From contig NW_021824678.1 of assembly GCF_006345805.1 (NCBI RefSeq), positions 1 through 40,837 of the forward strand: a DNA stretch of 40,837 bases, read 5' to 3'. A program made the position numbers and the translations under genes. Positions 1,779 to 34,402 of this stretch are shown in pieces; the stretch's first letter is position 1, and every line of letters begins with the position of its first letter. Below the pieces are notes generated by a model. That model was given only the letters and a program-made list of their open reading frames with translations, was not told the DNA's origin and ran no database searches. Source of the DNA: Octopus sinensis (taxonomy: Eukaryota).

Positions 1779-1857
1779 TATGGAAAAATATGGATAAAGA
1801 TCTTCAAACGTTTCCTTTTTTTTGGCACCAAATCCATAAACATGATACCGATTGTTG
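1779..1857 (-). CDS. Copine-family gene, exon (vWA domain): NNRYHVYGFGAKKKETFEDLYPYFSI
   Basis: Acceptor ttccatttcatgttttccag, donor gtgagt; 79 nt, phase 2 to 0; in frame with exon 2097-2249. YGFGAK matches the copine vWA (F/Y)GFGA(K/R) motif. Confidence 0.92.
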
Positions 1858-2096
1858 CTGGAAAACATGAAATGGAACTGATTATGGTTTTATAATCATA
1901 CACACACACACACACACACATATACATGCATACATACACACACACATGTATACACACACATGCATATCAACGCGCGCGCACGCACACAGATACTATATAT
2001 ACACACACACACTGTTTCTAACGAACAACGAGATGAAGATAAAGAGTTTCGTAGTGTCCCAACTACACAGCAGATTACAAGAATTCTCTGACTTAC

Positions 2097-2249
2097 GTGG
2101 TGTACTTTTTTAGCAAGGGCTGTAAAGCAAGTATGGCGGTTTCGTATAAACTCCTCTGCTTTTCAGTTATGTAATGGTTGCTAGTCGGCAACTTAGGGTC
2201 TTGGTTTGAAAGTCTAAAGTCTATAGCAAGTGTCACATCTATTTCCATG
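2097..2249 (-). CDS. Copine-family gene, exon (vWA start): MEIDVTLAIDFRLSNQDPKLPTSNHYITEKQRSLYETAILALQPLLKKYT
   Basis: Acceptor attatcattcgtctag, donor gtaagt; 153 nt, phase 2 to 2. Aligns to the copine INFTVAIDFTASNGDP...SLHY...Y..A...V..I..DYD block. Confidence 0.95.
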
Positions 2250-2259
2250 CTAGACGAAT

Positions 2260-2350
2260 GATAATAATAATAATAATAACAACAACAACAACAACAACAA
2301 CAACAACCAACAACGACGACGACGACGACGATGATGATAACAACAACAAC
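2260..2350. repeat. Compound trinucleotide microsatellite (AAT/AAC/GAC/GAT)
   Basis: Seen directly; source of the poly-I/T/N/D ORFs. Confidence 0.95.
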
Positions 2351-2530
2351 GGTTTCAAATTTTGGCACACGGTCATCATTTTGGGGGTACTTACTTTAGT
2401 GCTCAACTGGCACTTGTTTTATCGACCCCGAAATTATGAAAGGCAATATTGACCTCGACAGCGTTTGAACTCAGAACATAAAGACGGATGAAATGCCGCT
2501 AAGCATTTTGTCCGGCGTTCTAACGATACT
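2351..2530 (-). mobile_element. tRNA-derived SINE (family 2), degenerate copy
   Basis: Reverse-complement similarity to the plus-strand copies at 4425-4636 and 19447-19675 (gagttcaaattccgccgaggtc...ggggtcgataaa...gtacc). Confidence 0.75.
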
Positions 2531-2637
2531 GCCAGCTGGCCTCCTACTAAATAATAATAATAATGATAATAATAATAATAATAATAATAATAATAATAAT
2601 AATAATAATAATAATAATAATAATGATGATGATGATA

Positions 2638-3192
2638 AATGCCCTGATACAGTACCAGATAGTGGCTCTCGTGGCTTCTGATTTTAACTGATTGGAAGTG
2701 CTATCATGTACATTGTTTTGTCTTGGTATAAAAGATGGGCTACAGTAAATATTCTGCTCAATACCACATATTTGCTTGTCAGTCGTTTGACCTTAACCAG
2801 TTGAGCATGTCCCTTTGTGGCTGACGATATGTGCATCTCCGATCACGAGCAGAATTAGTGGGAGAGCATCATAGCCATGTGTTGAAAGGAATTCTTGGAG
2901 GTTTGGATAATTCACCTTTCGAAACGTGTGGTTCGTTCAACATCCTTAAACAATCCTTATTCAGGGACCTTTTGAGCGGGATGGGTTACTCGACCGAAAG
3001 AAAATTCTAACTGGGCCCACTTACAAGGTCATGCGCTGTTTATCTTGATATGAGATCACCATGTCGCGCACACATGGTTGTGATGCATGTGCCTGATGTA
3101 CTTTTATCAGACGGGTAGTCATGGTGGGTATACTGGGCTTCGTATATTTTACCGCAGTGTCACTTTGACGGCATGCACTGCTATCTCACTCA
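2638..3192. mobile_element. About 550-bp interspersed element embedded in (AAT)n
   Basis: Bounded by (AAT)n on both sides; its ctca end recurs at about 3420-3505 and, reversed, at 4766-4911. Confidence 0.7.
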
Positions 3193-3226
3193 ATTATAAT
3201 AATAATAATAATAATAATAATAATAA

Positions 3227-30933: not shown

Positions 30934-31100
30934 CATCGAGAAGTCGAAAATGTCGCTAGAAGCTAGGATCACCAAGCATAGATTGGCATATTTCGGTCAT
31001 ATTATGCGGAGAAAATCCCTGGAGAAGGACATCATGCTCGGAATGGTCAGTGGCAAGAGAGGAAGAGGCCGACCAAGAACCCGCTGGCTTGACACCATCA
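30934..31100 (+). mobile_element. RTE (BovB-like) LINE 3' coding fragment
   Basis: SLEARITKHRLAYFGHIMRRKSLEKDIMLGMVSGKRGRGRPRTRWLDTI is the typical RTE C-terminal motif. Confidence 0.88.
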
Positions 31101-32427
31101 ATATACATGTACATATATATATGAACACATACATATATATATATGTACATATACACATATATATACTTGTGCATATACATACACGGCCACACGCATATAT
31201 ATACACACACATAGATATATACATACGTTTATATATGCATTTATACATATATGTATGTGTGTTTGTATGTAGAGATACACACACACATACGCACAAATGA
31301 GTGCAAATAATAGTCTCTTCAACTCCACCCTAAATCAGCAGTAACGTCACATGACATAGGTGAAGTTTATTTAATATTATAATAATAGTTAGATTCGTAT
31401 ATTTCTTTAATACGTTTTTTATATTTTTAATGCTCATACAGTTAGAGCGATGAATTGGAAGACTCGTTAGCGTGTTGGACAAAATGCTTTGAATTCTTTG
31501 TCCCAGTTTTAGTTCAAATCTCGCCGAGGTCAACTTTGCCCTTCAAACTTCAACATTCTGTGATCAATAAAATGAAGAACTGCTCTCGCCCCAAAATATA
31601 CTCGAGGTTTTCTGCCCATATGCGAAACAATTCTTCAGAATATAAAGATCTTCTCCACGGCACCTATGCTTTTTTTATTTGTTCGTTTTTTGCTTTCTTT
31701 GTATTTTTTAAAGTTTACTTTGCGGGCGTGGTTGCTTTTTTTATTATATGAGTTTGTAAGACGTCAATCTCAGCAGCAAAATGGCAGAATTGTAAGCGCG
31801 TCGAACAAAATACTGCAAACTGTTTTGCCAGGTACTCTAAAGTATTGGGATTCTTTTAGCCTTTTTTATTCGTTTACTTGTTTTGATCATTTGACTGCGG
31901 CTATACTGGAGCACTGCCCTGGAGGGCTTTAGTCAAAAGAATCGACACCAAGCCATTTTTTAAAGCTTGGTACTATTGATCTCTTTTGCCGGTTGTCAAG
32001 CGGTGGTGGTGGGATAAACACGCACAAACACACACATACATATATACATACACACATAATGGGCTTCTTTCAGTTTCCGTCAACCAATTCCACTCACAAT
32101 TGTTTCGCTGTTGCACTTATTAGTCTAATAGCTTATTTCTCTAACAGCTGCACTCTGGTCTATGTTATTCAGCCCTTTAAGTTTTCATCTTGTCTGCGTT
32201 ATTCAATCTTTTAAGCATTCAATCAACATCATCTGAACTCGTAGGCTTGTTCTTTTCCTTCTCTGTAGTCCCTTAAGTTACAATAAATAGCTTCAAGCCT
32301 TGTTCGAGACAAAATCGCATTAAGATATATAAAAATATGCTAGGGATTCACACATGCAACATAGTGATCCGACGATATGGACATTACAGATAAGAAATGA
32401 TTTGATTTTTAAAATCAAATAGCGAAA

Positions 32428-32468
32428 GCAGTTTCTGTGTTTCAGACTTAATAGTCCTCGTCGGTAGA
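32428..32468 (-). ncRNA. Degenerate hammerhead core (CCGACGA-ggac/gtct-GAAA)
   Basis: Core and stem II are visible; stems I and III are broken. Confidence 0.35.
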
Positions 32469-32653
32469 GTAATATGTTTAACATATTTTGGCAATATTGT
32501 GAGTGTGTGACACACATACCGTAAACTGAATGCACTGTTCGGAACTTCGTTTTCCTGTTAGTTATAATTTTCGCACTATATATATATATATACACTCATA
32601 CATATATTGCACCCGTATCAAATTATGTGTATGTAGTGTTCATTACAGCCCGA

Positions 32654-33040
32654 GCTGTAATGAACACTACATAGGCTAAACTAAAAATAGCCTCCGCCAA
32701 CGCATGACTGTCCATAGATCCCACATAAAAATACAGGAATGCAGAAAAATAGCACTTAGTGCACATATTGATACCTGTGCTGCACAACTTCATCCCAATT
32801 TTAGAATCTTTCCCCTCTACAAATTTAAAGACAATGCCACTCATACCCAGCGAATAACCATGGAATCCCACCTTATTAATAAATACAGACCACTTCTAAA
32901 CACATCCCCCTAACACGAACCCACAACAAACACACTTACACCTGCACACACCCTACACACACTTTTACCCAGATATTAACACCATGACACACGCAAACAT
33001 ATGGTTCCACACATACACATAATTTGATACGGGTGCAAAA
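32654..33040 (+). mobile_element. 5'-truncated Penelope-like element: GIY-YIG endonuclease C-terminal half plus 3' UTR
   Basis: Frame from 32656 reads CNEHYIG*TKNSLRQRMTVHRSHIK...LSAHID.C...RITMESHLINKYRPLLN (YIG motif, conserved R, H, E and terminal N); in-frame stop after YIG. Confidence 0.8.
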
Positions 33041-33428
33041 CATCCAACACTATTTTTTGGAAATGACTGTAAATATTGACTTCACACAAACACGTTGCTT
33101 CCCGATACAGGCACAAGGCCAGCAGAACTATAAATATTGAAAATTGTACCCACACACGCACACATATATACACGCGCGCGCGCCCCAACATACATATAAA
33201 CACACACACACACGCGCACACATACATACATATAGCTCTTCCTGTCCTAAACGAACTTACTTTTCCAGCTCAAATTCAGTCAAGCGGAAAATACACTCCT
33301 TAACCACGCACTAAAAAGCTATTAAAAATATCCACATGACGTCTACTAACCAGCCTGAACAATAAGAATTTTCAACAACGGTTTTTTTTCGAAAACTCCA
33401 TACACCACCTACACCAACATTCATTCTA

Positions 33429-33624
33429 AACATTCACGTGACCTCTCTATTATGACAACATTCACGTGACCCCTCTATTATGACAACATTCACGTGACCT
33501 CTTTATTATGACCAATAAGAAATTTTAGGCGCGATACCAGCCAAATTTTAACATCTCTGGAGCCTATTTTCTTACCCCAACACCAACTTCCATTCAAACA
33601 TTCACGTGACCCCTTTATAATGAC
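33429..33624 (+). repeat. 28-bp tandem repeat (3 copies) plus a fourth dispersed copy, each carrying TCACGTGACC
   Basis: aacattcacgtgacc(t/c)ct(c/t)tattatgac at 33429, 33457, 33485 and 33597; the last two are followed by CCAAT. Confidence 0.9.
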
Positions 33625-34373
33625 CAATCAAAATTGTATTGACCATTGTCCACAAGAAATTTTAGGCGCGAAACCAAGCAAATCTTAAACAACTCTGGAG
33701 CCTTGTTTTTCACATATAAGAGACGGCAAACCCAACATAAAGTCAGATAAGAGAAAAAAATCAATCAGAAAGGAACTCTATCTCACTCAAAATATCTTTT
33801 GATAAGCATAACAAATGCGCAACCGGTAAACTCTTACTTTTTTTATTCTACACTGAAATCTGACATTGAACCTTTCCACAAAAAAACTGTATATTACACG
33901 GTTTTCTAAAATATCTTATTCTGAAACAGAACACTGTAAAAGACTCTTACTTTTTTTCTTATACACTGAAAAAATTCACAAAAAATGAACATTGTATTCT
34001 AACCCAATTTTTCTCTTTTTTTGTTTAAAAAAAGAACTTTCACCTAATTAAATACACTCTCCCTTACTTAAATTATTTTGTCAGCAATTTCTTCATTTCC
34101 TTTTTTTATATATCACAACTCGTGTTCCACATCTCCTTTTTTAAATATAATATATATATATATATATATATACACGACGGAATTCTTTCAGTTTCCGTCT
34201 ACCAAATCCAAATCCACACACTCCACACACAAGGCACTAATTGGCCACGGACTATAGCAAAAAACACTCGCCAAAGGTGCTGCGAAGGAGAGCTGAACAC
34301 GAGACTTCGTGATTGAGAAACAAGCTTGTTAACCACTCAGCCACACCCACAGAGAATAAAAATAACTACTTAC

Positions 34374-34402
34374 CAAACGAACAACTTCGTGCGTAGCTTC
34401 AA
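34374..34402 (-). CDS. Candidate copine exon (C2A-C2B linker): EATHEVVRL
   Basis: Acceptor ttttctttttttgtttcag, donor gtaagt; 29 nt, phase 1 to 0, fitting the phase-0 start of 19781-19878. Aligns to copine ...AEEL.... linker; low sequence identity. Confidence 0.5.

Follow-up and report, generated by a model that had tools for sequence, protein, structure and literature searches.

Putative upstream exons extend a highly divergent copine-like gene of Octopus sinensis into a degenerate C2B domain

The stretch of DNA analysed here (the window) is the Octopus sinensis unplaced scaffold VCDQ01002057.1 of assembly GCA_006345805.1, which is 40,837 bp long, has a G+C content of 37% and contains many microsatellites and transposon fragments. 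Analysis of its minus strand indicated that positions 1779-19878 probably carry the 5' and middle part of a very divergent and rapidly evolving copine paralogue restricted to Octopus, the 3' end of which would lie off the scaffold. An earlier sequence-only reading, made without database searches, had proposed at this locus a hidden copine-family gene spread over at least eight small exons and extending up to position 34402. All eight exons (E1 to E8), with AG/GT borders and with phases that chain save at one junction, were recovered and all their peptides were found within 1779-19878.

All exons lie on the minus strand. E1 (19781-19878, 98 nt) encodes EYDVQLRLSGKNIKGRSPQVCPFITLYKQIER followed by the AA of a split Lys codon and corresponds to C2B strands 1-2; its borders are the acceptor ...tcatcattcag/G and the donor AA/gtaagt. 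E2 (16794-16898, 105 nt, entered in phase 1 and left in phase 2) encodes (K)WEKLGTTDAVAYDTILNQQEINIPEKDFSDGDIH(K) of the middle of C2B, and E3 (13646-13668, 23 nt) encodes (K)KLYLRCF plus one base before the donor C/gtaaga; these three exons are unannotated. The last C2B strand is found on E4 (8094-8157, 64 nt, (R)KMLIGGFKTNPEDLAYKKSFE) and part of the linker on E5 (6378-6410, 33 nt, IKNKRWQTCGV). E6 (4257-4318, 62 nt, ISIEKFRLKPRIDYVKYMDT(N)) carries linker and the start of the vWA domain, E7 (2097-2249, 153 nt, MEIDVTLAIDFRLSNQDPKLPTSNHYITEKQRSLYETAILALQPLLKKYT(T)) carries the copine vWA N-terminus, and E8 (1779-1857, 79 nt, NNRYHVYGFGAKKKETFEDLYPYFSI) is preceded by a phase-2 intron. The acceptors of all eight exons are AG, mostly after a pyrimidine tract, and the donors are GTAAG or GTGAG. 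From E1 to E8 the phases run 2/1, 2/1, a break, 0, 0, 2/1 and 2/1, the first three exons chaining because the terminal Lys of both E1 and E2 is split AA/G across the intron. The peptides QNPSISR and ...YMDTN are not literal matches, since their end residues come from split codons. Together with a candidate 19-nt piece between E3 and E4, the eight exons amount to 636 nt and 212 codons with zero stops. A strict exon heuristic, which demanded an open frame, a YAG acceptor preceded by at least 70% pyrimidine and a GTRAG donor, yielded just 21 intervals for the entire minus strand; E1, E2, E5, E6, E7 and E8 were among these.

Upstream of E1 its frame stays open through the acceptor up to an in-frame ATG (19879-19962, minus strand, MSKLITRHLLVVVRNYSFLFFLSFIIQ/EYDV...). 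That E1 might open the coding sequence and supply a hydrophobic N-terminus is pure speculation.

A full-length copine hidden Markov model (HMM) was built from an alignment of 57 canonical copines of 500-600 aa, which had been gathered with a profile made from the annotated protein parts of O. sinensis and O. bimaculoides only; because the model was built without E1 to E3, the scores of these exons are free of circularity. The spliced peptide aligned collinearly with positions 158-364 of the copine HMM, across C2B, linker and vWA, with 129.4 bits, and E1 to E4 alone gave 29.4 bits at C2B positions 157-254. Adding the parts one after another raised the score by 1.3 bits (19-nt piece), 4.4 bits (E3), 14.4 bits (E2) and 9.6 bits (E1). 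Alignment of E1 to E4 with hhalign gave the copine C2B block a probability of 95.3% (E = 2.4e-8, 96 columns), C2A 76% over 44 columns and vWA 0%.

Since E1 and E2 taken singly score below 0 bits against the copine HMM, and since Pfam C2 gave no match even at E <= 10 on spliced peptides of 153 and 212 aa, the upstream exons might be thought fortuitous open AG..GT segments picked by eye. This is highly improbable, as jointly E1 to E3 contribute about 28 bits, are collinear and phase-compatible, reach the above hhalign E value and are favoured by nulls drawn from genomic segments. After 1000 shufflings of E1 to E3 the peptide scored 100.3 ± 1.2 bits and never more than 107.6, so that the real 129.4 bits lie 24 standard deviations over the shuffles. 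When 6183 other open AG..GT segments of the window were put in their place, E2 was equalled only by fragments of the gene's own E7 and E1 by about four segments, which were of low complexity. The chance explanation is effectively refuted for E1 to E3, while the 19-nt piece and a segment at 34374-34402 stay candidates only. On these profile comparisons E1 to E3 appear to be genuine copine C2B sequence and a sound 5' extension of the gene.

Analysis of the downstream exons revealed that E7 alone scores 47.8 bits against the copine HMM and that E6 to E8 match the solved Arabidopsis copine BONZAI1 (PDB 6KXK/6KXU) with E = 1.6e-9, E6 lying inside this match. The Pfam family Copine (PF07002) scored 28.2 bits with E6 to E8 (cut-off 27) and 26.2 bits with the entire peptide; the match sits on E7-E8 and, owing to the end of the scaffold, is limited to positions 2-46 of the 218 in the profile. 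These matches, with the collinear HMM alignment and the hhalign result, bear out the C2B-linker-vWA order that the sequence-only reading had assigned. That reading had named the C2 and copine vWA profiles as its own check, and the spliced peptide matched Pfam Copine but left Pfam C2 silent.

Copines are characterised by two C2 domains, of which C2A is N-terminal and C2B directly precedes the linker and the C-terminal vWA domain. The order of C2B, linker and vWA is shared with canonical copines (vertebrate CPNE1-9, a tunicate copine-3-like protein and BONZAI1), as is the signature AIDF(T)xSN...P.S.HY...(F/Y)GFGA, of which AIDF..SN, P.S.HY and YGFGAK are kept. Unlike them, the octopus gene lacks the C2B calcium aspartates, has no detected C2A domain and shows a ratio of non-synonymous to synonymous substitution rates (dN/dS) of about 1.4, compared with their high conservation. 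Identity over aligned columns was 25% to fugu CPNE3 and 20% to the tunicate copine, against 54% between fugu and tunicate over the same columns, in agreement with the high divergence claimed for the gene.

The aspartates of C2 loops bind calcium and canonical copines then bind membranes (calcium-dependent phospholipid binding), carrying partners on the vWA domain. In the alignment the calcium-loop motif LD.KD..GKSDP of canonical copines reads LSGKNIKGRSPQVCP in O. sinensis, and the motif DYDxxGxHD reads QNPSISRKM or RKKQILWIPRKM, depending on the bridge between E3 and E4. None of the five C2B aspartates is left (LD to LS, SDP to VCP, DxDxxxxxD to QNPSISRKM), and because all five are replaced, calcium-triggered membrane binding through C2B would not be expected. 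The vWA metal site, which resembles a metal-ion-dependent adhesion site (D-x-T/S-x-S), is changed on E7 from DxTxS to DFRLS, with Thr replaced by Arg, and reads DFTIS in O. bimaculoides. In the vWA continuation of the latter species IHF stands in place of GPT, and the Asp of TD(G/E) is retained.

A search with the spliced peptide in a collection of 5.8 billion proteins, transcript-like Logan contigs included, returned two matches. The first, XP_029653822.2 ('copine-9-like', O. sinensis, RefSeq, 150 aa), comes from the same scaffold and reproduces E4 to E8 junction for junction. Its coding sequence starts with the Met at 8153 within E4, the first Met past the broken E3/E4 junction, and because the scaffold stops it ends in an intron read-through of 21 residues followed by a stop (1713..1778, minus strand, VSIFSFNQNLTSNYILSLTER), a tail that is an annotation artefact. 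The second, XP_014782464.1 ('copine-8(-like)', O. bimaculoides), has 177 aa, and an older 212-aa model of the same cluster, UPI00069581ED, starts with E5 and E6 and has E5-E8 junctions identical to those of O. sinensis. The gene is thus not hidden as had been claimed, since five of its eight exons, with four junctions, are already in public annotation. Compared with the spliced gene, XP_029653822.2 lacks E1 to E3 and the bridge, together 82 aa of C2B; E1 to E3 are what is new relative to RefSeq, and the present work refines an annotation and is no discovery. Nothing relevant was found in the literature on copine in octopus.

The RefSeq start at 8153, and the O. bimaculoides models, which likewise lack upstream exons, would suit a gene that holds a vWA domain only. 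Such a gene would comprise E4 to E8 and downstream exons and start at the E4 Met, E1 to E3 being ancestral C2B remnants, either untranscribed or part of the 5' untranslated region. We regard this as unlikely, as the frames of E1 and E2 are still open, their phases are compatible and their splice signals are among the strongest on the strand, and as E4 starts in the middle of a C2B strand, so that a protein beginning there would carry a useless C2B fragment.

The one junction at which the phases do not chain is that between E3, which leaves one base, and E4, which needs two. A candidate micro-exon of 19 nt at 12398-12416 (minus strand, ttcttag/AAAATCCTAGCATTTCTAG/gttgtg), encoding (Q)NPSIS(R), would restore the frame; its acceptor is good and its GTTGTG donor is weak. 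The candidate matches the profile length exactly, with 129.4 bits against 119.1 without the seven residues, and a 7-residue filler of any kind would fit the profile much the same. Within the 5.5-kb intron 159 open AG..GT segments are compatible in phase, among them six of 19 nt, and an alternative in-frame bridge is given by extending E3 by 27 nt to 13619 (donor AAG/GTCTCA, 122.3 bits). The exon QNPSISR of the earlier proposal is therefore one of 159 compatible candidates, with a weak donor and an in-frame alternative, and remains a candidate. The intron between it and E4 also contains a remnant of a Tc1/mariner-type DDE_3 transposase (10975-11889, minus strand, Pfam E = 1.2e-10).

The locus of XP_014782464.1 on O. 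bimaculoides CM046611.1 is the orthologue. E5 to E8 have the same splice sites there and 75-100% protein identity per exon, the flanking intron DNA being 83-93% identical; in E5, 31 of the 33 nt are kept between the two species and the splice sites are conserved. XP_014782464.1 matches the copine HMM at positions 301-456 with 133.8 bits, and its vWA continues past the point at which the O. sinensis scaffold ends. Because about 3.9 kb separate E8 from the next downstream exon in O. bimaculoides, the following exon in O. sinensis is probably off the scaffold. No further vWA exons were found beyond 17426 in the O. bimaculoides locus stretch, a weak negative as the part past that position consists largely of N runs. 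Large runs of N in the locus stretch lie at 5710-9932, 17788-22352 and 24269-25766, besides smaller ones, and because of these runs the last ~100 aa of the vWA domain are not to be called absent in that species.

Comparison of 327 coding nt between the two Octopus species revealed 34 non-synonymous and six synonymous changes (dN 0.142, dS 0.101, dN/dS 1.41), consistent with the claim that the gene is fast-evolving. The exons contain 0 indels and 0 stops in 327 nt and the introns 17 indel events in 1430 nt, and all 16 bases of the E5-E8 splice dinucleotides are unchanged. Rough neutral probabilities of finding no indel, no stop and no splice change are 0.02, 0.14 and 0.22, or jointly ~6e-4. The pattern is that of a frame which has been maintained while the amino acids changed in an unconstrained or diversifying manner.

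Gene structure was compared with the exactly mapped exons of fugu CPNE3 and of a Clavelina (tunicate) copine, both chordate references. Only the phase-2 intron that precedes E8 has a counterpart of equal position and phase in both; the other seven intron positions differ, the junctions used by RefSeq included, and the comparison is neutral with respect to E1 to E3. The gene appears restricted to its lineage, as had been suggested, only two Octopus proteins being close among the 5.8 billion sequences and the 1.84 billion representatives searched. In the latter set an exhaustive HMMER search met canonical copines only at E >= 4e-22, and the one closer match, at E = 4e-30, was to a protein of a diatom that has several vWA domains. 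When a canonical octopus copine was sought with a tunicate query, the best 120 matches held only chordates. A search of other assemblies for E1-E4 fragments or transcripts, in the form of concatenated stop-free segments, gave none at E <= 10.

The main rival to a maintained paralogue is a decaying gene or unitary pseudogene, drifting neutrally after the loss of its function, of C2A, of the calcium sites and of part of the metal site. E1 to E3 would then be relics no longer joined in frame to E4 to E8, and the RefSeq models would be homology-driven predictions on a dead locus. A number of observations weigh against the maintained paralogue and agree with such decay: dN/dS does not differ significantly from 1; exon divergence (11.7%) is at least equal to that of the flanking introns (9.1%); all C2B aspartates are gone and O. 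sinensis has Arg in place of the metal-site Thr; the frame across E3/E4 depends on a candidate bridging piece, for which the possible fixes are weak; no C2A exon was found with positions 1-156 of the full-length copine HMM in six frames over 19879-40837; and both RefSeq models, of 150 and 177 aa, are short and have read-through at their end. Transcript-derived proteins are without the upstream exons as well: the 5.8-billion collection contains no protein with E1 to E3, and therefore no sign of their expression. To these points are added the silence of Pfam C2, the seven intron positions that differ from chordate copines and the indel-based neutral probability, which is rough and optimistic as intron indels cluster in simple repeats. 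On the other side, all 636 nt of the O. sinensis exons are open and eight strong splice-site pairs are intact; E5 to E8 have passed through ~10% neutral divergence without indel, stop or splice change, with the low joint probability given above; and the copine motifs AIDF..SN, P.S.HY and YGFGAK are kept despite ~75% divergence from canonical copines. Decay is accordingly a genuine possibility, if a lesser one, and we favour a divergent paralogue that is still maintained.

Nothing supports exons in 19879-34402, and the gene span up to 34402 claimed earlier could not be upheld. The only feature there is an AG..GT segment of 29 nt (34374-34402, minus strand) with a strong pyrimidine tract, a CAG acceptor and a GTAAGT donor, which joins E1 in frame as (x)EATHEVVRL and presumably explains the end of the earlier interval. 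As a candidate exon it added 1.5 bits, fell below its own shuffles and ranked 597 of 3344 candidates, with no homology support. The C2A domain could be lost, too divergent or off the scaffold.

Most of the region 19879-40837 is taken up by a 3.8-kb tandem duplication and by the remains of transposons. The duplication (22015-25839 and 25779-29613; 3838 nt, 99.4% identity, period ~3.77 kb) has (CA)n-rich tracts and carries a fragment of a Tc1/mariner helix-turn-helix transposase in both copies (24552-24872 and 28324-28644, minus strand); the duplication may have arisen recently or may be an artefact of assembly. A broken retrotransposon of the long interspersed nuclear element (LINE) type is found at 38091-39703 (plus strand), with further pieces at 35991-36476 (minus) and 40016-40100 (plus); pieces of its endonuclease and of its reverse transcriptase (RVT_1, E = 8e-16) are read in different frames, and the region holds two copies of a related C-terminal open reading frame in opposite orientations. 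Long (TATA/CATA)n-type microsatellites occur at 8253-9593, 13745-14017, 37231-38058 and 40129-40469, the first of which, 1.3 kb long, adjoins E4 on its upstream side. Near the scaffold end, at 932-1205, a 111-bp unit is repeated 2.5 times with 98% identity. A dispersed short repeat resembling a short interspersed nuclear element is present at 19005-19072, 17701-17768 and 13172-13239 (minus) and at 6826-6893 (plus); it holds an open AG..GT segment of 68 nt that mimics an exon, and related copies are scattered across the O. bimaculoides locus.

In the maintained paralogue, E1 to E3, if expressed, would carry the reading frame into a C2B domain that is degenerate yet still recognisable, with a short bridge, either the 19-nt micro-exon or the 27-nt extension of E3, needed to reach E4. 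The rest of the vWA domain would lie off the scaffold, the O. bimaculoides orthologue showing it up to copine profile position 456. The product would most likely be a calcium-independent scaffold or decoy built on the copine fold, whose sequence may be evolving freely or under diversifying selection while the frame is kept. A bolder proposal, which we put forward tentatively and consider rather doubtful, is that an Octopus-specific copine duplicate was rebuilt as a C2B-vWA protein that works independently of calcium and may have no C2A. As in proteins of the recognition or immune type, diversifying selection (dN/dS > 1 while the frame is strictly kept) would act on its surface, and a conserved 19-nt micro-exon would encode the former calcium loop.

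The practical value of the analysis is an annotation fix, as the RefSeq model is truncated at both ends and three or four upstream exons may be added to it, which would show that the protein retains a degenerate C2B domain. The finding opens no long-standing question and is of mild interest for gene-family evolution, as a small case in which a conserved family of calcium sensors would have given rise, in one cephalopod lineage, to a rapidly changing paralogue without calcium sites.

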